Shown here: positions 6,684-62,232 of the stretch, one piece after another | Layout of the letters: each line of letters begins with the position of its first letter | Numbering within the stretch: position 1 is the first letter of the stretch | DNA from: Rhodosorus marinus CCMP1338 | Lineage: Eukaryota; Plantae; Rhodophyta | Direction of reading: 5' to 3' | DNA: 64,000 bases | NCBI GenBank assembly: GCA_029953675.1 | Contig: JAMWBK010000013.1 | Coordinates: 372,001 to 436,000 of the forward strand | Program-made: the position numbers and the translations under genes | The notes under the pieces: model-generated | What the model saw: only the letters and a program-made list of their open reading frames with translations | Databases searched by the model: none | What the model was told of the DNA's origin: nothing

Positions 6684-8981
6684 CTAGAATCCCCATTCAT
6701 CGAACTCGTCCGAATCCATTCTCTTCAACTCCCCGCCCGCGCTGGCTTTCGTATTCACGTTTGCCTGTTGCGAACTCGCCTCCATCGTACCTTGGAATGT
6801 GTTCTGAACAGCAGGCGCCGCTTGAACAGGCTGCTGCTGATAGTTGGCGTAATTTTGGTCATTAAACGTTGGTGCTGCACCGGCTGCAGCTGTGTTCTGC
6901 ATGGCCGGCGCCGGTTGACTGGGCTGCTGCTGATAGTTGGCGTAATTTTGGTTATTGAACGTTGGTGCTCCGCCAGCTGCAGCTGTGTTCTGCACGGCCG
7001 GCGCCGGTTGATTGAGCTGCTGCTGATAATTGGCGTAGTTCTGGTTGTCAAACGTTGGTGCTGCGGCAGCAGCAGCTCCTCCAGCTCCCCAGAAATCGTC
7101 ATCACCCGAGTCATCCGAATCATTCTGCGGCGGCGGGGGGGGAGGGGTAGGGTAGTCTGGGGGCATCGATGGCGGGGGAGGCTGATTCGCGACGAAATGC
7201 TGCTGGTCATACGCCGCCATCTGCACGGCTTGACCAGCCATTTGGCCTGAGAATCCTCCTTGCATGGCAGCTCCCGGGGGAGCGAGCGGCTCCTGTTCTT
7301 GAGCTGGGCCCTTCTTATGTCTTCGCGGTGCTGCTGCGGCTCCTTGAAGCGGTTGAATAGATTGCACCATCTCCGGCTGTGCCATACCTGGCATTGGTTG
7401 TTGCAAAGGTACTTGCGCTTGGGCATTAGGGTGCATTTGCACCGCCATTTGCATCTGTTGCTGCTGCATTGGGTCCTGAATCTGTTGCAGTTGTTGTGCT
7501 GGTTGTTGCATCGCCTGTTGCATCGCTTGCTGCTGCAAGTGTAATGTGGTCGAGTCGTGCACCGGCGGTGCCATTGCCGGTTGCAGTCCTTGAGGCACAA
7601 CCACCTGTTGAACACCTTGAGCCATAGGAGGTTGCTGCACCTGCTGCTGCTGTAGTCCCGGCTGCAGTGGGTTCTGCGCAACGGCTTGCATCGGCAACTG
7701 TGCCTGGTCCTGCGGTGCCATTTGCGCGGTATTCTGGGGAGCTTGAAATTGCTGGTTGTTTGCCAAGGTCATTCCATTCATTGCCTCCTGCGCCTGCAGC
7801 AGCTGTTCGTTATTGGCATTTTCAGCTGGTGTCTGCGCATAACTCTCCGGCTCCGCATGTCCTTCCCCTGTTGAAGCAGCTGACTTTGGTGGGAACTCTA
7901 TTTCCCTGGCCGTCGGGGGGAGGTGAATGCCACTAGCATCTGATGATGCCTCTTCGCCCGCAACCCGAAGCCAATTCAAGCCAGACGGATCGAGTTTCGT
8001 GGGTAGAGCATCTGGTCTTATCCGCTTTTCCCGTAGTAACTTGATCAAATGCACCGCGTTCTTGAACTCGTGGACATCCAGCCGTCCATCGGCGGTCACG
8101 TCGCAGAGGTTCCACACTTGTCGCAGGAGCTGACGCGGCAAACCTGATTTGTTAAATAGTTCCGCTGCCCGAGGTCCATTGACATAACCAGAGTCCGCCG
8201 GATCCGAAGCTGCAAACATTTCCTGATACCTTGCGTTCTGCGCTGGTAGTACTGTCCAAAGGGATGTAGTCTGCGCGGCATTCGCCCCCGCCGTCCCGAC
8301 CATAGCCGCAGGTGCTGGTTGCGACGGTGCCGATCGCGCAGGCTGCTGAGGCCTCTGCTGCGCTTGTGGAGGCGCGTTCATCTTAGGAATGAGTTGAATT
8401 CCTACAAAGTTTCTCAATCCACCCACAGTAGGTTCTGCTCCTCTCTGGGCTAGAGCGATCAGGCGCAGCGCGATGTAGAACTCTTCCTTCTTCAGGAATC
8501 CTTTTCGCATGTGGTCCGCAGTGTCCCAGATCATTCGAAGCTGGTTGCGGCTGAGATTCTCAGCACAACTCAACACCGCGCCTGCAGTCTTTGCCGACGC
8601 TTTCTCGTTCCCACCGCTCGCCCTCTGCCATAATTGCATATATACTGCCTCCTCTTGTGGATTCATCTTTAGATACTGCGAGCCCTCTAAGCAATCGAAG
8701 AAAATGGCAACGGTAGATCCAAGAGTTAGGACTTCGATCGGATTGAAGTATTGACGAACATTCGCGGGAAAAAAGTCCATACCATGAGGTTTATCCGCTG
8801 GAGTTTCCGGTGCCAACAGCAATCCATTCGCACCAACTCGTGCGGCGCCTCCACTTGGTCCATATCCGTAGGCTTCAACGTACCCAACCGTACGGTTTTC
8901 GGGAACCCCTGCAAATGGTTGTTGCTGTCCATATCCAGGTGGATACCCACCTCCATAACCTCCCCCTTGACCAAAACTCAT
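6684..8981 (-). CDS. EH (Eps15-homology) domain protein with two EH domains and a Q/P-rich tail (Eps15/synergin-gamma/Pan1-like adaptor)
   Basis: Single 765-aa ORF with LSRNQLRMIWDTAD...EFYIALRLIALAQ and SGLPRQLLRQVWNLCD...GRLDVHEF, both EH-domain signatures. The C-terminus is low-complexity and ends DSDEFDEWGF. Confidence 0.85.
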   Translation of the reverse strand: MSFGQGGGYGGGYPPGYGQQQPFAGVPENRTVGYVEAYGYGPSGGAARVGANGLLLAPETPADKPHGMDFFPANVRQYFNPIEVLTLGSTVAIFFDCLEGSQYLKMNPQEEAVYMQLWQRASGGNEKASAKTAGAVLSCAENLSRNQLRMIWDTADHMRKGFLKKEEFYIALRLIALAQRGAEPTVGGLRNFVGIQLIPKMNAPPQAQQRPQQPARSAPSQPAPAAMVGTAGANAAQTTSLWTVLPAQNARYQEMFAASDPADSGYVNGPRAAELFNKSGLPRQLLRQVWNLCDVTADGRLDVHEFKNAVHLIKLLREKRIRPDALPTKLDPSGLNWLRVAGEEASSDASGIHLPPTAREIEFPPKSAASTGEGHAEPESYAQTPAENANNEQLLQAQEAMNGMTLANNQQFQAPQNTAQMAPQDQAQLPMQAVAQNPLQPGLQQQQVQQPPMAQGVQQVVVPQGLQPAMAPPVHDSTTLHLQQQAMQQAMQQPAQQLQQIQDPMQQQQMQMAVQMHPNAQAQVPLQQPMPGMAQPEMVQSIQPLQGAAAAPRRHKKGPAQEQEPLAPPGAAMQGGFSGQMAGQAVQMAAYDQQHFVANQPPPPSMPPDYPTPPPPPPQNDSDDSGDDDFWGAGGAAAAAAPTFDNQNYANYQQQLNQPAPAVQNTAAAGGAPTFNNQNYANYQQQPSQPAPAMQNTAAAGAAPTFNDQNYANYQQQPVQAAPAVQNTFQGTMEASSQQANVNTKASAGGELKRMDSDEFDEWGF
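6800..7075 (-). repeat. Three tandem 93-bp (31-aa) coding repeats in the EH protein
   Basis: CTGCTGCTGATARTTGGCG recurs at 6831, 6924 and 7017. The unit translates as APTF[DN][ND]QNYANYQQQxxQPAPAxQNTAAAGx. Confidence 0.9.
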
Positions 8982-25467: not shown

Positions 25468-25950
25468 TTAATCCGCGAAAGGATTTGCGTGTATCGTTGT
25501 GCTCTTCAAAACAATGTCTGCGACTGGTCGATCCTTCGCACCCACAGGAACAGCTTCCATTTTGTCAAGAACCTCATCTCCATGGATAACTTTGCCAAAC
25601 ACTGTGCAGGTCTGGTTCAGATGCGGAGCTTCTGCGTATGTTATGAAAAACTGAGACCCGTTCGTATTCGCTTGAGAAGTTGCCATCGCAAGCTGTCCGC
25701 GGGAAACAAACTTTGCTTCGGGATCGATTTCATCCTCAAACTTGCCACCCCACATTGACTTGCTCTTCCTGCCCGTACCAGAAGGATCGCCTCCTTGAAT
25801 CATGAACCCTTTCATATTACGATGAAATATCGTACCATCGTAGCTCCCTGAAGCAGACAAGCCAAGAAAGTTCTCCGAAGCCTTGGGAGCTTCGTCACAA
25901 AATAATTCCAACTTGATATCTCCCAGAGATGTATGTAGTGTTACCGACAT
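25468..25950 (-). CDS. PPIL3: Cyclophilin-type peptidyl-prolyl isomerase, PPIL3 subfamily
   Basis: 160 aa: MSVTLHTSLGDIKLELFC, FHRNMKGFMIQGGDP, NTNGSQFFITY, VFGKVIHG and the C-terminal IHANPFAD typical of PPIL3. Confidence 0.92.
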   Translation of the reverse strand: MSVTLHTSLGDIKLELFCDEAPKASENFLGLSASGSYDGTIFHRNMKGFMIQGGDPSGTGRKSKSMWGGKFEDEIDPEAKFVSRGQLAMATSQANTNGSQFFITYAEAPHLNQTCTVFGKVIHGDEVLDKMEAVPVGAKDRPVADIVLKSTTIHANPFAD

Positions 25951-36229: not shown

Positions 36230-36830
36230 AGTTCTGGAGGGCCAAACGGAGGTGGCCCCTGTTAGTTTTTAAAGCTCAAGGGGCTGAAAAGCGGAGGAGG
36301 CCACTGTTAGTTTTCGAAGCTCGAGAGGCCTAAAGCGGAGGAGACCACTGTTATGTTTCGAAGCTCAGGGGGCTAAAATTTGAGGAGGCCACTGTTCCCT
36401 TTTCGAAGCTCGTTGGGCCAAAAACCGGAGGAGACCACTGTTACTTTTCAAAGCTCGAGGTGCCAAAAAACGGAGGAGGCCGCCAGCCACTGTTACCTTT
36501 TTTTCAAAGCTCGAGAGGCCAAAAACGGAGGAGGCCATTGTTACTTTTCAAAGCTCGAGGTGCCAAAAAACGGAGGAGGCCACCGTCATTTTTCAAAGCT
36601 CGAGACTCCAAAAGCGGAGGAGGCCATTGTTACTTTTCAAAGCTCGAGGTGCCAAAAAACGGAGGAGGCCACTGTTACTTTTCAAAGCTCGAGAGGCCAA
36701 AAACGGAGGAGGCCATTGTTACTTTTCAATGCTCGAAGTGCCAAAAAACGGAGGAGGCCACTGTTACTTATCAAAGAGCCGAGAGGCCGAAAACGGAGGT
36801 GGCCATGGCTACTTTTCAAAGCTTGTCGAC
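36230..36830. repeat. Minisatellite of ~13 units of 44/45 bp with an alternating 89-bp higher-order structure
   Basis: GGAGGAGGCC starts recur at about 36293, 36337, 36427, 36472, 36527, 36572, 36616, 36661, 36705, 36750 and 36795. The consensus is GGAGGAGGCCAYTGTTACTTTTCAAAGCTCGAGRKGCCAAAAA(A)C. Confidence 0.95.
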
Positions 36831-37396
36831 TAGGTGGGGGGGTCAGGAAATTTCGCCCTCATCCTATGATGACCATTGCTAGCTTCGTACGGCATCTGAT
36901 GCATGTGGCGTCCAGTACAATGCAAGTAATCAGCGCCTAAATCTTCTTGCCCGCGGGTTCAGTTCTTCGCTTAGAATAGTTCTCGTTTATTCGTCCCGTA
37001 CTATCTAAAATATTGCAAGCAGCCAGCTGTTCAAGCTTCAGATTCCTTTGAAAGGCTTAAAGAAGAGGCCTCCCTTCTTTTTTTTTGGTGCTATAACTGT
37101 AGCTCTCCTGAAAAGTTGAATCAAGTTTTACACCTTCTATACGCTTGAAGTGTACGATCCTGTTATGTTATTCTCGGTTAACGAACAATGATTAATCTAT
37201 GTGCACGGTGCCTTTTTGGTTGGATGGCTTCCTTCCCCAGTAGATTGATGGAAGCGCACTTGAAAAAAGAAAACAAATCACTGCGTTCCTCTCCGCCAGA
37301 GGCAAAAGTTCAGCTGCCACGCGACGCGGGATCTATCACCGCAAGCATCAATCTTGGAATACTCGATGAAATCGACACCCGCGGACTGCAAGTAGA

Positions 37397-53400: not shown

Positions 53401-55798
53401 TTCTGAGGATCCCGTTTTCAACGTCTTGGTCGACCAAGGAGAAATCGAGAAGCAAATTCTGGTTAAGTCTCCTTCTGAAGCTACCATGTACACAGAGCGC
53501 GAGCATCCGAACATCCGGAAATGTTGGCTACCGGATGGCTCACAGATGTATACCAGGAATTCAGCAGCCGTAAGTACTGGGGCCAACTTAGTTGCATGAG
53601 TGCTCATCCCACATCCTGCACTGTTGTTGGAGAGGCCGGACGGTTTTGCAGGAATATCATTTGGTCAACAGTTTTTCACAAGCGCCCACTCATGTCACTT
53701 GCACAGGTCTATCGGAGCGGTGAGAGGCACCTGCCCGTGTTGCTTGCACAGGACATGACGGATCAGATTAATGCCTTACTATCTCGAGCAGAAGATCTTG
53801 CCCGGGAAGGGAACGAGGTACAAAAACACGGTTCAAGTTAGTGCTCGTTGGAACTGCTCGTAGTTGGGCTGAAACCATCAAAACCTTCTCTACGAAAATC
53901 AGCTTCGTGCGAGGAAGTCGTCTATTCAACGAGAAAGAGATGAACTCTCGCAGAAAGAGTTGACCCTGACTCGAGGGAGTCGGGACACTCGCAAACGCAT
54001 ATCGCAACTGGACTTTGACATTAGCCGGCTTCAGAGTGCTATCGAGGAGCGGGCGTCAGAGTAAGAATGCGAAGAATATATGGACCCCACTCGAGCGCTG
54101 CCATAGTGCTGTGTTGTGTGTTGTCCGGTACGGGCTCTCGGTTTTCTCAGTCTTCGACTTCGCCCTGTCCAGGTTCGACTCTAGTTCGTGGGATGCGCAG
54201 ATCGCGCAGACTCGAGAGGACACAGAAGAGCAGAAACGGAAGAAGGAAGACATGGCCAAGAAAATTGACGACTTGAAGGAGGCGATGTCTGAGGTAGAGT
54301 CTTGGCATTCAATCTTTGTTTTCGCCGCAAAACAAAAAAAAAATTCTCGTGGAGAGTATTGAAACGCATGTCTTGACAATGCTCTTCGCTTCCCACCATC
54401 GTGTATTCCAGACAAACCACACCCTGGATAATGATAAGGACCTTCTTGAAAACCTCGGCGGCGAGCTGGAGGATCTAAAGAAGAACTTGGATGAATCCTC
54501 GGACGCGTACCGAAAAGCTGTGGCTTCTTCGTCCCAGGGCAAGGCAAGGATGGAGAAACTAAAGACAATGAAGGAGGATGCAATGCAGGCGCTGCAGAAC
54601 TTCGAGGAAAAGCTGCAAAAGGTAAATGATGTGAACGTTCAGCAGAGTACAAAGCCGGCTTTCCCTCTGAACTGTTTCGGATGCGATTTCAGGAAATTGA
54701 CAGCGCGATGCAGCTTGCTCCGGAGCGCATTTACCGCGGACAGAAAAACTCTTCCCAGTTAGAGTCAGATATTAAGAAGCTCAAAGCAAAGTAGGAATAT
54801 TTCCTTGAGACCTGTCTGTTTGTGCTTCAGCTCGATGCCTAATACGAATTCTGCTGATATGACAGATTGCGAGGTGAACAAGAGAGGCACGCTGGCCGAT
54901 CTCTGCTGGAGATCGAGAAGGAATACATAGAGGCCAAGCAGAGGAAGGCAAAGAACGATCACGACCTTAGGAAAATGGACGAGCATCTCCGCCGTGTGCA
55001 TACTGGGTACTCGGCGCGGAAGAAAAAGTATCTTCGAATGAGACATCAGACGAAGGTCGAGACGAACGTGCACTTCAAGTACTTCATGGCAAAGCGGAGA
55101 CATATGGGAGAGCTAATTTTCGATGACAAAGGTGGAGAAAACGGTGGTAAGAACTTGGCAGCCTGTGAGCAATCTACTCAAATCTGTGCTTGCCTTACCT
55201 TTCAATCTTCCTGTGTTCACATTTGCAGAGGGAACCCTGCGTCTGAACGTCGCAATGTCCAACCACAAGAAGAAGGACGGCGGCAGGTACCGGACAGGCG
55301 AAATGACAGGCCTATCTGGAGGAGAGAGGAACTACACAACGTTTTGCTTTATGCTTGCACTAGGTGAATCAATCAATGTCCCGGTTCGAATAATGGTAGG
55401 AACCAGAAACAGACCACAGACCCTTTCCGAGCACATGACTTGCGCCAGACTGAGGTTCTAACGAGGACTATGTGCTGTTCTCTTGTAGGACGAGTTTGAT
55501 GTGTTTATGGATGCCCAGAACAGAAGAAGCTGTTACGAAACCTTGATAGATGTGTCCAAGGATATGCCAGGACGACAGTTCGTTTTCGTCTCCCCTCTCG
55601 AGCTCCCAAACGTGCAGGCTAGCCTGCGAGTGAAAATTCAGAAACTGGCACCGCCTGGTACGTAGCGACGGAGGTTTGCATTTTCAATTGCTTTGATTAC
55701 AAATTGACCGGTTCTTGCCGGATTCTTTTCGCGTTTGTACAGAACGCCCAGGCGTGAGACAGCAGTACCTGGAGGAATTCGTGAATGTCAGCACGTGA
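50466..55798 (+). CDS. SMC6: Structural maintenance of chromosomes protein 6, highly intron-rich
   Basis: IRLENFMSH, Walker A GQNGSGKSAI, QVENP..VLTQ..SK.FL, coiled coils, hinge PIGPVGAYV, VLVDQ.EIEK.ILV, signature LSGGER and D-loop DEFDVFMD (SMC6 type; SMC5 has DEINQGMD). The final exon is ERPGVRQQYLEEFVNVST*. Confidence 0.93.
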
Positions 55799-56118
55799 AG
55801 CTCTGCAAAAGAAGAAACCAGCCAATCCTTCCTGTGCTATGCCAGACAAGAGGGGCGTTCGATTTTTCCGACGTTGATGGCTTCAGACGAATTTGTTTTA
55901 ATCCAATCGTTCTTCCGATGAAATTATATATTTTTCTTAAAGTTTATCACCTTGTATCTTATCCACAGCCCAGAAAAAACTCAACACGCTGACACTCTCA
56001 ACAGTGCTGGTTTCCACGCTGATTTGCGCAAGCGGGAGACGGGAACGTCGACGATTCCTAGGGGGAGCAGCAAGATCAAGGTTATATTTTGATCATCACA
56101 GCCCCGGCCACTCACGAT

Positions 56119-59100
56119 CTAGAGCTCCTCGTCCCCCACCGTTGCTTCTTCAACATCGTCGCCTTCGTTAGCGTCCTCATCAAGGTCTTCATCAAAATCT
56201 TCGCCAATATCTTCGTATTCGTAGTAGTATTCATCATCTGATGACTCCTCCTCATCCAATGCTTCAAAGGGAATATCTTCGTCAAGCACCATCTTTTCAG
56301 TGGTGTCAATCATAGCTTGCAGGTCATCCGAAAGCTCTAGGGGTGATGATTCCGCAGATGGCTGAAAACAACACGGATTGAAAGACTAAGCGAACGAAAT
56401 CGAAATATACCTGGAGTGATCAATTTCGTACCATGCTGACCAAAACCTTTTCTAGGCTCGACCTCTCGAATGATATGTCCCCTTCGAAGAGAACCTGACC
56501 ATTTTTAAAACCAAAAAAGAGGCAGGCGTAACGCGTGAATATAAGATACGTGCACATGGAGGGCGTTGTTCATGCTACTCACATTCTCAAACTTAACGTC
56601 TTTGCCGCCCTTTGTAAAGTCCCAGGAGACGGAGTCCTTGAAAGTACACTGTCATGAAGCACGCAATCATAGAAAGAAGTAAAGTTAGGCAGGAACCCAT
56701 TGCATACGTGTACGCGAACAACCTACGTCAACAAATCTAACTGCTGTCAAAGTTGCTCCACCAAAGTTGACTTTGCCGACGAACGTAACCTGATAATCAA
56801 AGAAGAATTGAACAGTGAACCGTCTAGCTACGAAAACGAGGGAAGCAAAACCAGGCTCCAGGCTGAAGCAAAAAGTTGTACCATGAGAAACTGCGTACCT
56901 TGCTGAACGTGACTTTGTGCAGATTAGCGCGATCGAAGCAAGCTTCGCCCATGAACACCGTCTGCGAATTGACGAGGTAAATATTAGATGAATTTAAGCA
57001 TTAATGACAGAAGCATCCCCCCACCTCAGCCACGGTCACTTCTTGAATTTTCGCCCTGCAAAACCGTGAATTGTCTCCGACGACAACTGTAGTTAGAATC
57101 ATCCGGCTCAGTTTGGAATCCATTGCTACTACACCACCTTTCACAGATACCTGAAACAAAATTATCACATTGTCAGGTGCCGAGAATCCATAAGTTTATA
57201 CCCAAACCCCTGACTCTAGTCTGAGTTTATGCTACCAGCTTCCATTCTTGAGACTTACTTCGCTTAGAGCAGTCTTCCAAATCGAAGAAGAGCTCAACAC
57301 CAAGTCTTCCAATATTGTTAGCTGGGCGACGTCAAAGTAGATACAGAGTCAGATGCATATCCCACATTCTACAGTCAAGTGCTGCTTGAAAAAATTTTTT
57401 CGCGGATGTCCTACGGAATCAAAGGAGCATTCCCCAATTCTGGAAGTGGGCGCCAGCAATGAACCGTACACTTGGACGTCGCTAACGCGAAGCTGCAGCG
57501 CTTTCATTTTTCTCGATATTAGTCCCTCCCCCAAGGCGACCTGAGAATTCAAAGGAGTTTGAATTAAATCAGGGTGCGTAGGGAAATACACCCCAGAAAA
57601 CGGCTGGGGGCAGGACCCTCTCACCCTATTGATAGAACCCTTTCGCAAGAATATGTTTTCAAGGTACACGGAACCTGCCACCAGCAACTGCAAAGAAAAA
57701 GAGAAGCTTAACATTTGTCTTGTTCAACAATGGTGAGGCGCATCGGCAGCCTGCCTACCTCGGTGAAGGAGAACTTATCGAGACGAGCTACAGACTCAAT
57801 AGAGACTGATGCAGCAACTGAAACCTGTACGGGCCAATGGAGACAGTCTGGTAAGTCCACGAGCAGTAACTAGTAATCTAGTGCCTTGGCCAACCTTTTG
57901 GAATTCGACACGGCTGGCCTTAAAAGATGTAGCTAGCAAGCGTCCGACGATCTCCACCTGTTTTGCACATGCCTCATCGTTAGATGAACCAGTACACAAT
58001 CATCTATTCTGTGCAACATGCCGCATGTATCTACCTGTGAGACCTTGCTCTTGTGCATTCGACTATTCTCAATAACAACCTCGCTGTTAACGGTGATCTG
58101 GACGAACAAAAGATCCAAAGTTTGAACCAGCTCGGTGAAGCTGTCTGTGGGCTTGTAATGCGCAATCACTTACGTTCGATGCGGATGACTCCTTCATGAA
58201 CGGCTTCTCCAATCGCAGTGAGAGTTCCACTTTCAACTTCGTAAGAGCAACACAGACGAGATGATTAGTCAGAGTTGTTCAAGTTGTGTCCTGAGCGAAG
58301 CACGAAACTCCAAGTTGAGCACGCGGATGGCTTACGTTCTCTACGACTGCCTTTCTGAACGTCGGCGAAGCGAGTTTAAGCAGTCCACCAACAAATATCT
58401 ATGATACACCAGAGCCACAATACTAGCATAAGCTCAAAAGCAGTAAGCAATATTTCAAAAACACCGTACCTCAGAGATTGAGACGCGTTTGAAGAACGGC
58501 TTCTGGATCACCACGGTCCTGTTCATGTGCACCTATTGCAGATAGCGATTCTATGAGCTGGTGCGATGACTTCGATCCCCTAAATAAACTCATTTCCTTT
58601 GTATCACCAACAGGGAATGAACCCAGTACTGCCTCATCCACATATTCAAGAGCTGGTCGTGTACGTACCATGCCAATCAAGCTATTCATGGCTCTCATGT
58701 TTTCGAGGCTCAAGAATGCCGGAAACTTGATCTACAGATTCCCGGCAATAAAGAAAAGTGACAAAAGTGGACCAGTACACAGGTTAGCTATTTTGGAACC
58801 CAGCGAATCACTGCAGTCAAAATTCGAGTGAACTTCTCACATTTCTAGCGATTGAGCCTACTAGCTGAAGCGCATTCATGCGTGAAGGTCCCCCAAAGCT
58901 AATCTACGTAATCGCAACGAAACTTTCTCGTTAAATGCTTCCCGCGCGAGTTAAGCTTCACCAGTGGAGTCAAGCGAGGGATTAATGCTCGTACCGACGA
59001 AAGAATCGAATTGGAGTAGCTTGCCTTCACCATTGTAGTAACGCCAGTAAAAGTTACCTGGTAGTTCCACAGCACAGACGAGATGTGAGATGCGTGAATG

Positions 59101-59921
59101 ACGTTCATGCACGTTGCTTGCGCTGAGTACACCGCAGATGCTGTTACGTACCTGATCAAAGTAGGAATTCAAGTAGTTCCTGTGTGCGACAGTTGTGCCT
59201 CCTGTGACGTAAGTTACCTGCAACAACGAAGCAGATCCCAGGCGGAAAGTCAGCCTACAAATGCGCAGTGAGGTATCTCTGACAATTCACGGACGCACAT
59301 TCTGCCACATCGTGTGCCTTGTCGGAAAGATACTCCTTTTGCTCTGTCGAGAAGCCTGTCACGTACACACTAGCTCGGTCAGACAGTAGCACAGCCTAGC
59401 ATTTGGGGTAGGCGAAAGGATACAGCGCAACTTACGAGCACGGCCACATCCTCAATTTTTTCTTTGTGCAGACATCTGTATTTGTGGCCATCGCTCATAT
59501 CGAGGTTCTTGTAGGTCGCGTCTGGGTTCATCCATTCAGTTTTGCTCACAATCTGTAAAAACAAGCGGACACCTTTCTTCAGATCTGACGAGAAAAAAGA
59601 AAAGTATGCGTGTCAAGAAAGTAATAGTCTCTACCTTAGGAACGCATGATTTCAGTCCGACGTGAATCAAAAAGCCGCCAAGCGCCACCGAGCCAAGAAA
59701 GATCACCCCAAGGAAAATGGAGAAGACGATGAGGAGCTTCCTAAGACTTCCGGAGGGTTTTCCAGACGCCGCTGGAGGAGAGGTTTCCTGGAGGGTCTAT
59801 TAAGAAAAAAAAAAAAGAAGAGAGAATATCCAAACCATCAGAAGCTGATCCACTTCCGGACAGACCAAAGAAAGAGCTTTCGATTTCCACTGCAGCATAC
59901 CTCGACTACTTGCGTCGCCAT
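56119..59921 (-). CDS. Type II membrane protein with ~20 pentapeptide-type (Rfr) beta-helix coils and an acidic tail; 23 exons, all introns phase 0 (~622 aa)
   Basis: Exons read by hand, all with GT..AG borders: 59921-59901, 59796-59635 (TM), 59552-59436, 59355-59299, 59217-59152, 59057-58995, 58903-58841, 58731-58669, 58532-58470, 58398-58336, 58236-58174, 58097-58035, 57957-57895, 57824-57759, 57687-57625, 57540-57415, 57321-57259, 57150-57025, 56961-56899, 56789-56727, 56648-56583, 56494-56432, 56361-56119. They join into one open frame. Confidence 0.85.
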
Positions 59922-60885
59922 TTTACGCTCGAGTATCTCCAAAAACCCGCTACAAAATTATTACATTCACAACAACTTGCCTCAGCCGTTCTCACCCCTG
60001 CGCTACACACGACCTTCTACTCTGCCCCAGTCGTATGATCGCCAACAGCCTGTTTTAAGCTCTGTTTCCCCACCGAAGCAGCAAATCGGAAGCCAAACGG
60101 CCAAAAACGATCCTCTATTACTTGATCCGCGTCCTAATACCAAAAAAACGGGTTTCACCCTTTTTCGCAAACTTTTATGTGGCCAAAACAACCTCATCAA
60201 CAATGTCGAATGATCCCGCCCCACTCCCCACAAGAGAAATCTAATATCATTAAAATTTTGGACAGTACCTGAGTTAAATTTCCTTCAGAGTAAATTTTTT
60301 CTTCGTACATCTCCAGAAAATTCCAAAATAGCTGTCTTTTTAAATTCAGTTATATATTTTAATTGGTCAATAATTATTTAATTGTTAAAATAATAAGAGG
60401 GTCATATCCAAATCTCCTCCTGTTTTGTATGGAAAACGTGAAAACCCGTTTCCGCAGGATTTCAATTTCTCTCCGAAACACACAAAAGAGGCGCAAGTTT
60501 ACAATAATGCCATAATAGATCTGATATTTTATTAAGGTAAGCTTTTTCAATAGGCTGTTTTGTTTTAAGTTTTCCAAATTATGGTGCGTTGAAACTCCGT
60601 TTGAAAATGTCTAAAAAAACGAAGGTCTATTCAAACTTGGGCAATAATGGTTGGCTACATCTTATTGTTGAATTTTGAGAATAAGATGGATCATTTGAGG
60701 GTACTGATAATACTGATATCCTTACGGTTTTAACGGATACTCAACACGAAAAAACGGTTTACTTAATACCAGTAAGTTTGACCTCTCGAACTGTGCTTGT
60801 GGCCTTTTTAGAGGCACAGTCTCTGCCGTTGGGTGGTCTGCGATATCCGGCAGCGGGAGCGGGTCACGGCTCATTTGAGATCACT

Positions 60886-62232
60886 ATGGTGAGTCCCAAG
60901 CTGAGCTATAGGAAGGCTCCGAATTGGAGGATGCAGTCGTCCGCGGGCCTGTTCGGATGGAAGAGTTTCGTCATTGCGTGTGTTGCTCTTTCTTTGATTG
61001 CGCTCGGCGTGTACAGAGGAAGGCTGGTGCAGAAAGACAAAATCTCTACGACTCTGTTTATAGCGATCGGATCCAAGCCCTCGAACTTTCATCTTCGAGA
61101 ATCTGCGCGAAGATCCTGGCTGCAATGGACCTCTCCTGGGAACACTGAATATAAGTTTTTCAGTGACCACCCTCAGTATGCGGAGGACAGTGATAAGGAG
61201 CACGCCGAGAAACTGCTCTTTGAAGCTAAAGCTGTACGCGTAGATGAATCCAAGAGCCGTACCTCTTCCCCTGGGGTATCCAATATCGTTGTCATCTAAA
61301 ACTGCGTTTGTCACTCTCTTACAGGAAAAGGATATGGTGCTTATGAACATAGAAGGTGGCTACGGGACAAAAGAGGACAACAACTTCCTGGACAGAGCGC
61401 TCTATCAGTTTGAATACGCTTCCAGGAACTACGACTTTGACTACTTCCTTCGCGTGGACGACGACTCCTTTCTTTGTTTACACAGACTAATGTTTGAATT
61501 GAAATCCTATCCCAGTCAGCAATTCTTCATGGGAAGGTATGTACCAACGGGAGCACTGCGCACTGTAATCACATCCGATCACTTGCTTGTGTTGATCTGA
61601 TCAGACTTCTCGCTCAGGTTTTGGTGCAAACCTGGAAGGCATCGCGCGGACGAGAACTTTATGCTGTTCTCTTCCGACCTTGCTGAATTCATCGTCGGCC
61701 GAACGTCCTTAGTACCGATGGATCCCAGCGTCACGTTCGCTTGGAATTTTGGGCTACTCGCATACACGCTGAACCTAACCATTTTCGACGATCAGAAACG
61801 TATCGACGCGCAACAAGGATACCTAACAGACTACATGCACGCGAATTCATCGTCGAGAGCAAACTCTGATGGATATAAGGAGTTTTGTGAAAAGTCAGTA
61901 CTTCACTGGACATCGTATCTGACCGCGCTAGGAAGAGTACCCTTGTGGGCCCTGAACTCCAGCTTCAGGGGTCCCAAATGAATTAACTCTAACAAGCCCT
62001 TTCCGCGCTTACAAACTCACGACTGCTCAGGTACATCTACGCACATCACGTAAGACACGGCGATATCATGAAGAAGGTATACTCCTCGACACAGATACAT
62101 CTGCTGTACGATGCACCGGAAATGAGCAGTCATCGTGAATCCTGCAAAGCGACAGAACAGAGCTTCATCCCAGCGAGGCATTCGAAAACACTGCCTGACA
62201 TCATTGTGGGAACCAACAACGCCGCCGTTTAG
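60886..62232 (+). CDS. Galactosyltransferase, GT31 family, type II membrane protein, multi-exon
   Basis: TM helix (FVIACVALSLIALGVY), LFIAIGS...LRESARRSW, YKFF, DMVL, YDFDYFLRVDDDSFLCL.RL (DxD motif), then further exons to TAG at 62230-62232. Confidence 0.85.

Follow-up and report, generated by a model that had tools for sequence, protein, structure and literature searches.

Does a row of very short open segments in the genome of the unicellular red alga Rhodosorus marinus CCMP1338 form a real gene, and what kind of protein would it encode? The segments lie in a stretch of 64,000 nucleotides (GenBank assembly GCA_029953675.1, contig JAMWBK010000013.1, positions 372,001 to 436,000), which is called the window in this study and to which all positions refer. 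They were assembled into a gene of 23 exons and 22 introns on the minus strand at 59921..56119. An earlier note on this DNA had read exons 5-22 (E5-E22) as the successive coils of a pentapeptide-type β-helix, one exon per coil, and had proposed a membrane-anchored rod of tunable length. The results make it likely that this is a genuine nuclear gene of R. marinus, with an orthologous transcript in a close relative and apparently missing from the protein collections searched, and that it encodes a single-pass protein with a degenerate pentapeptide solenoid of about 20 coils grown by duplication of exon units.

Exon grid and evidence for a real gene

Every open segment between AG and GT with a length that is a multiple of 3 was enumerated on the minus strand from 56050 to 60000. 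The enumeration reproduced exactly the exon lengths given in the earlier note for E5-E22 (66, eight times 63, 66, 63, 126, 63, 126, 63, 63, 66, and 63 nt). All of these exons were open and in phase 0, with AG before and GT after. The 17 introns between the coil exons were 63–136 nt long, and all of them lay in phase 0 between coil positions 21 and 1.

The longest chain of AG-GT units of 63, 66, or 126 open nucleotides, separated by gaps of 60–140 nt, was determined by dynamic programming. It consisted of 18 units and corresponded exactly to 59217..56432. The maximum in 300 shuffles of the locus was 5 units. The longest chain elsewhere in the window was 8 units, within a long open reading frame (ORF) where every segment is open. 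The splice sites were also examined at positions outside the selection criteria. The donors had G at +5 in 19 of 21 cases and A at +3 in 16 of 21; the acceptors had C or T at −3 in 20 of 21 cases and were T-rich upstream. Three visible introns of the neighbouring SMC-type gene had similar donors (GTAAGA, GTAGGA, and GTACGT) and similar lengths.

For codon usage, 11 long ORFs of the window served as the training set of the scoring table. The assigned frame scored +67.5 bits, compared with −303 and −298 bits in the other two frames, and the introns scored −0.34 bits per codon. The coding sequence reached 0.11 bits per codon, inside the range of the training genes (0.06–0.26). E5-E22 contained 423 codons without a stop, and all 42 splice dinucleotides were intact. 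The gene was judged to be real because the chain of 18 exons exceeded chance, the codon usage was that of a coding region, the unselected splice positions were conserved, and the product had a 21-residue repeat.

The start of the gene was placed in exon 1, since no other in-frame ATG occurs upstream of exon 2; the context of this ATG is A(−3)/G(+4). Two candidates were found for exon 4. In the 57-nt candidate the acceptor was CAG and the donor GTGCGT, the introns on either side measured 80 and 81 nt, and codon usage scored −0.09 bits per codon. The 105-nt candidate reads ..VYVTGFSTEQKEYLSDKAHD.. and has 'YVTG' in common with exon 5. It scored +0.17 bits per codon and required an intron of 40 nt, below every other intron of the gene. 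Splice signals and intron lengths were better for the 57-nt candidate and codon usage for the 105-nt candidate, and both were retained. The spliced product has 622 or 638 aa, depending on the candidate.

The length of intron 15 (57541-57624, 84 nt) is a multiple of 3, and this intron is free of in-frame stops. Its retention would add 28 aa between two coils and would not truncate the protein. Five other introns of the gene also have lengths that are multiples of 3, and all five contain stops.

Transcript of a close relative

The aligned exon translations were converted into a coil profile, which was used for a full HMMER search of 1.84 billion representative proteins. Four proteins were obtained at E ≤ 0.001. 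Three of them were unrelated low-complexity repeat proteins. The fourth, P0004, was a TransDecoder ORF of 160 aa from an MMETSP transcriptome ('Transcript_14403/g.21004'). MMETSP includes Rhodosorus strains.

P0004 was collinear from end to end with the predicted E19 (from an internal Met), E20, E21, E22, and E23, with 133 of 160 residues identical (83%). The sole difference in length from the predicted product was an in-frame 2-aa deletion in E21, and the tails encoded by exon 23 were 80% identical. In tblastn, the segments of P0004 for E22 and E23 stopped exactly at the predicted exon borders. The segments for E19-E21 extended slightly beyond a border and had mismatches, or a gap at the intron. 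Since P0004 was collinear across the last four predicted junctions, the last four introns are removed in the close relative as predicted. At the inward sites of E19-E22, one conservative V-to-I change was counted among 24 sites, compared with about 10 changes at outward sites, in an alignment read by eye. The grid, the codon usage, and the transcript thus bore out the earlier reading of a spliced gene with one 21/22-aa unit per 63/66-nt exon in fixed register.

Coil pattern and organization of the protein

Residues 120-542 consisted of 20 units of 21–22 aa. The 17 units of exactly 21 aa were stacked. Hydrophobic residues occupied positions 3, 14, and 19 in all 17 units, positions 1 and 9 in 16, and position 7 in 14. 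The inward positions named earlier (3, 9, 14, and 19) were therefore correct, and positions 1 and 7 were conserved too. Positions 12 and 17 were small or hydrophobic, and Gly was found at position 5 in 10 of the 17 units. Positions 11, 13, and 16 were rich in K/R, and position 10 was frequently Glu. The inward residues can be described as i (3/9/14/19) and i−2 (1/7/12/17) of a coil of 21 residues (6+5+5+5), in which positions 1 and 7 carry large residues. Judged from the stacked units, this pattern fits a pentapeptide coil with four faces, the first of which is longer by one residue and contains the Gly.

The hydrophobicity of the coil region was analysed by Fourier transform. A peak was found at 5.25 aa (21/4) with a power of 4.18, compared with a maximum of 3.09 in 2000 shuffles. 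The autocorrelation had peaks at 21, 42, and 63. In E5-E18 alone the 5.25-aa peak had a power of 4.0 (shuffle maximum 3.35), and it exceeded the 99th shuffle percentile in each half, E5-E13 and E14-E18. The repeats are real, though old and degenerate.

The membrane anchor claimed earlier corresponded to a strong predicted N-terminal transmembrane (TM) segment, with a Kyte-Doolittle maximum over 19 residues of 2.78 at aa 28-46. The coil domain was net basic (52 K/R and 37 D/E). The 80-aa acidic tail that follows it is probably disordered.

Family assignment and predicted fold

The spliced product matched Pfam PF13576 (Pentapeptide_3) with 48.2 bits, above the gathering score of 27. Within this match, aa 457-501 formed the best stretch and spanned the junctions E18/19, E19/20, and E20/21. 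P0004 passed PF13576 (47.9 bits) and PF00805 (22.0 bits, cut-off 20.2). By sequence, the last four coils or so are assigned to the pentapeptide family. Sequence matches in the PDB were weak (E 0.004–0.9) and were nearly all to pentapeptide-repeat proteins: AlbG (2xt2), the SV2C luminal domain, TL15, Qnr, and MfpA. Archaeal ribosomal protein S9 and an uncharacterised protein fell outside this group. The 21-column coil profile found no match in the PDB. The pentapeptide type proposed for the repeat was supported by the PF13576 score, by PF00805 in the orthologue, by the mostly pentapeptide PDB matches, and by the 5.25-aa period.

A hidden Markov model (HMM) was built from E5-E18 only. With this model, E19-E22 scored 11.1 bits and the coil segment of P0004 scored 10.1 bits, and none of 200 shuffles reached either value. 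The Pfam-silent coils could be tied to the C-terminal coils because both have the same exon/coil register, because the 5.25-aa peak is present, and because the HMM of E5-E18 recognised E19-E22. We infer a four-faced right-handed β-helix over all 20 coils, which would form a rod of about 10 nm at 4.8 Å per coil.

A scan of bacterial and archaeal genomes yielded only generic pentapeptide proteins with 26–39% identity. The closest non-algal sequence seen was a 190-aa pentapeptide protein (L002, 608-1180) from an uncultured Saprospiraceae metagenome-assembled genome. It has the exact 10-mer RFVDCTFKDS in common with exons 20/21, which is probably a convergence within a constrained repeat.

Origin and age of the exon-per-coil layout

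The exons and introns were compared all against all by blastn-short. Nothing longer than 11 nt was found among the exons and nothing longer than 13 nt among the 22 introns, and copies of the introns were absent from the rest of the window. The lack of DNA similarity among exons and introns indicates that the duplications are old. An introner-like or repeat origin of the introns was considered and rejected, because the introns are unlike each other and unlike the rest of the window.

In the most likely history, a unit of one 63-nt phase-0 exon plus an intron would have been duplicated serially in tandem. Duplication of such a unit would explain why the introns recur at one fixed corner of the coils. 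Two introns may have been lost later, or may never have been present, which would give the two 126-nt exons. The copies would have diverged beyond recognition at the DNA level, with the inward hydrophobic ladder kept.

Opposing evidence and alternative explanations

Several observations weigh against the proposed gene, protein, and history. The 16 coils of E5-E18 had no Pfam match, and hhalign gave no alignment between the E5-E18 profile and a bacterial pentapeptide protein. The coil of 21 residues departs from the canonical 20. The leave-one-out coil scores were positive for all units and significant for only about half of them. AlphaFold2 on the single sequence of P0004 gave a predicted local distance difference test (pLDDT) score of 46, too low for a usable model. 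Three K/R residues were present on each side of the TM segment, and the membrane topology is ambiguous. Transcript support covered 4 of the 22 junctions and came from a relative, not from CCMP1338. P0004 began at an internal Met of E19, so that the transcript is either 5′-incomplete or unspliced at the upstream intron. Nine of 21 exons ended in AG and nine of 21 started with GT, so that the introns may instead have been gained periodically, at an AG|GT site that recurs, rather than by duplication of exon-plus-intron units.

The earlier note had gone further and proposed that exon skipping, duplication, or shuffling gives varied coil numbers, and thereby a surface or recognition protein that can be tuned in length or diversified. 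Its statement on the reading frame holds. All 18 coil exons are symmetric, in phase 0, and multiples of 3 nt, and skipping or doubling them would be frame-safe; this is a matter of arithmetic and is no evidence that it occurs. The precedent it cited, brown-algal leucine-rich repeat (LRR) and tetratricopeptide repeat (TPR) genes with one repeat per exon, is real (PMC3341825, PMC11378527). The orthologue moreover has an in-frame 2-aa length change in E21. Nevertheless, the absence of DNA similarity among exons or introns speaks against recent duplication or shuffling, and the 64-kb window contained no paralogous or further coil exons (best non-member 6.0 bits, members 7.8–19.4 bits). The exhaustive coil-profile search led to a single true relative, P0004 has E20, E21, and E22 in the same order, and the protein has no signalling domain in Pfam. 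The idea of a tunable or diversifiable rod found no support in these results, and it is considered unlikely.

A wider form of this idea is that Stylonematophyceae carry a whole set of exon-modular pentapeptide-helix genes, hidden and for the most part without annotation, with a coil number that varies by paralogue, strain, or isoform. Such a set is rather improbable. If present, it would provide membrane-anchored rods that bear a conserved basic stripe and can be adjusted in length, and exon-cassette diversification would act on a β-helix rather than on LRR/TPR.

The fold could also be a three-faced or LRR-like solenoid with repeats of 21–23 aa (BspA/TpLRR), in which only the C-terminal end is pentapeptide-like. 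The repeat length of 21–22 aa is within the range of BspA-type LRRs, and 16 coils were Pfam-silent. A weak match to LRR_5 (PF13306) was found with E 0.017 and 15.4 bits; it remained below the cut-off of 27.7, whereas the pentapeptide models were above theirs. The dominant period of 5.25 aa, with the silent coils included, corresponds to four equal faces per 21 residues. The stacked coils had no Asn-conserved column or ladder, and the HMM of the silent coils recognised the pentapeptide-positive ones. An LRR-like fold is consequently quite unlikely.

The locus could also be a relic that is decaying or has lost its function, or an artefact of the gene model, with an exon pattern that has fallen out of use. 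This would agree with the strongly degenerate N-terminal coils and with the lack of a protein of this strain with these exons in the protein collections, but it is highly improbable given the 423 stop-free codons, the 42 intact splice dinucleotides with a conserved extended consensus, the codon usage in the range of the neighbouring genes, the conserved hydrophobic ladder, and the transcript in a relative, where substitutions mostly spare the inward positions.

Homologue searches and annotation status

A word-indexed protein search with the full 622-aa model and with a two-coil alignment returned nothing; this is a weak negative, as the search also missed P0004 in the same collection. No relative was found among the metagenome contigs. 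The exhaustive profile search returned no CCMP1338 protein with two or more of these exons, although such a protein would score very high. Because the profile was built from these exons and still no CCMP1338 protein matched, the gene is probably not annotated, or annotated quite differently, in the data behind the searched collection. In the literature searched, no report was found of a pentapeptide-repeat β-helix encoded one coil per exon.

Possible function and significance

Red algae are believed to have lost the majority of their introns. The nuclear genome of R. marinus CCMP1338 (31 Mb) contains 8392 genes with a total of 24,821 introns, an average of about 3 for each gene (PMC10250338). 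The present gene has 22 introns, with one at a constant corner of each coil, and is a clear outlier. It would be a clean record of the growth of a solenoid protein by duplication of an exon-plus-intron unit. The protein would also be unusual, as a lineage-restricted and predicted membrane-anchored pentapeptide helix with 21 residues per coil and an acidic tail. Pentapeptide-repeat helices and one-repeat-per-exon architectures are each already known; new is their combination in an intron-poor red alga. Genes with exons of 63 nt escape ORF-based annotation and probably some annotation pipelines, and similar genes may be missed systematically in algal genomes.

The anatomy of the protein permits a low-confidence guess at its function. 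It may form a stiff rod, about 10 nm long, that a single TM helix holds in the membrane. The basic stripe at positions 11, 13, and 16 may bind polyanions, or the rod may serve as a rigid spacer that carries the flexible acidic tail away from the membrane. Both roles are speculative.

Features of the locus and of the window

The coordinates of the gene and of other features are listed in Table 1. The other genes of the window were ordinary, with mostly long exons.

Table 1. Positions of the exons of the R. marinus gene and of other genes in the window.
Feature	Position	Strand	Description
Exon 1	59901..59921	-	ATG and 6 codons (MATQVVE), donor GTATGC
Exon 2	59635..59796	-	162 nt; short N-terminal segment and single predicted TM helix (about aa 28-50)
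Exon 3	59436..59552	-	117 nt; 39-aa juxtamembrane linker, donor GTAAGT; in-frame codon usage +7.8 bits
Exon 4 interval	59291..59395	-	Two candidates: 59355-59299 (57 nt) or 59395-59291 (105 nt)
Exons 5-22 and 17 introns	56432..59217	-	18 phase-0 exons, 20 coils of 21-22 aa
Exon 5	59217-59152	-	66 nt
Exon 6	59057-58995	-	63 nt
Exon 7	58903-58841	-	63 nt
Exon 8	58731-58669	-	63 nt
Exon 9	58532-58470	-	63 nt
Exon 10	58398-58336	-	63 nt
Exon 11	58236-58174	-	63 nt
Exon 12	58097-58035	-	63 nt
Exon 13	57957-57895	-	63 nt
Exon 14	57824-57759	-	66 nt
Exon 15	57687-57625	-	63 nt
Exon 16	57540-57415	-	126 nt; two coils without an intron between
Exon 17	57321-57259	-	63 nt
Exon 18	57150-57025	-	126 nt; two coils without an intron between
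Exon 19	56961-56899	-	63 nt
Exon 20	56789-56727	-	63 nt
Exon 21	56648-56583	-	66 nt
Exon 22	56494-56432	-	63 nt
Exons 19-22	56432..56961	-	Four coils recognisable as canonical pentapeptide repeats; junctions backed by the transcript of the relative
Exon 23	56119..56361	-	80-aa acidic tail (36 D/E, 1 K/R) and stop codon
ABCG transporter gene			701 aa, single ORF
Mannosyltransferase gene			
SMC-type gene			Converging on the present gene
Cyclophilin gene	25468-25950	-	Single exon

The gene is closely flanked on both sides. An interval of about 320 nt (55797-56119) separates its stop from that of the convergent SMC-type gene, and one of about 960 nt (59922-60886) separates its start from a divergent gene for a membrane protein (ORF 60778-61299). 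This ORF had no Pfam match, and none was found in the protein collection by the word-indexed search, which is a weak negative.

Two other repeat regions were observed in the window. A tandem array at 36244-36823 comprised 12.7 copies of a 45-nt unit (an 89-nt period was also detected) with 78–82% matches. It lies inside an open ORF of 186 aa (36380-36940) with KTEEATVTFQSSR-like units, and it may belong to a repeat protein or represent a minisatellite that is not coding. A single-exon gene at 6684-8981 on the minus strand encodes an EH-domain protein of 765 aa with a long Q/P/N-rich tail. Three tandem repeats of 93 nt (31 aa) with 86% identity were found in this tail at 6798-7077.

Comparison with known systems

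The closest parallel in gene structure is found in the ROCO-LRR and NB-ARC-TPR genes of the brown alga Ectocarpus, which have one repeat per phase-0 exon (PMC3341825; PMC11378527). Both systems are algal and have runs of equal-length phase-0 exons that each encode one solenoid repeat. The repeat is a pentapeptide helix in R. marinus and LRR or TPR in Ectocarpus. The R. marinus protein matched only pentapeptide models in Pfam, whereas the Ectocarpus proteins are fused to a signalling module (ROC-COR or NB-ARC). The LRR/TPR exons of Ectocarpus have been shuffled recently (PMC3341825), while the present gene showed no trace of recent exon duplication or shuffling. The Ectocarpus genes form multigene families; no gene family was found here in the 64-kb window or among the 1.84 billion representatives. 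The host lineage is also different and is intron-poor, with about 3 introns per gene.

The protein resembles known pentapeptide-repeat proteins, which have the Rfr-type right-handed quadrilateral β-helix (for example AlbG/McbG-like proteins, Qnr, MfpA, and TL15 of the thylakoid lumen), in that its C-terminal coils passed curated cut-offs and that the inward i and i−2 residues would lie on four faces per coil. It differs from them in the length of the coil, which is 21 residues (6+5+5+5 with Gly) instead of 20, and in the degeneracy of most coils, which are beyond the reach of Pfam. The i−2 positions 1 and 7 carry large V/I/L here, whereas Ala is found in the known proteins. The present protein is also eukaryotic and predicted to be membrane-anchored, with an acidic tail and a gene split coil by coil. 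In contrast to Qnr and MfpA, its rod is net basic; DNA mimicry is therefore unlikely.

The luminal domain of SV2A/B/C is likewise a eukaryotic, membrane-attached helix of pentapeptide type, displayed luminally in SV2. The matches to it were weak, both for Pfam PF23894 (E 0.013; 16.3 bits, below the gathering score of 29) and for the PDB entries 6es1 and 5jmc (E 0.05–0.1). SV2 is a transporter with 12 TM segments and a helix of about 5 coils, whereas the R. marinus protein is predicted to have one TM segment and about 20 coils.

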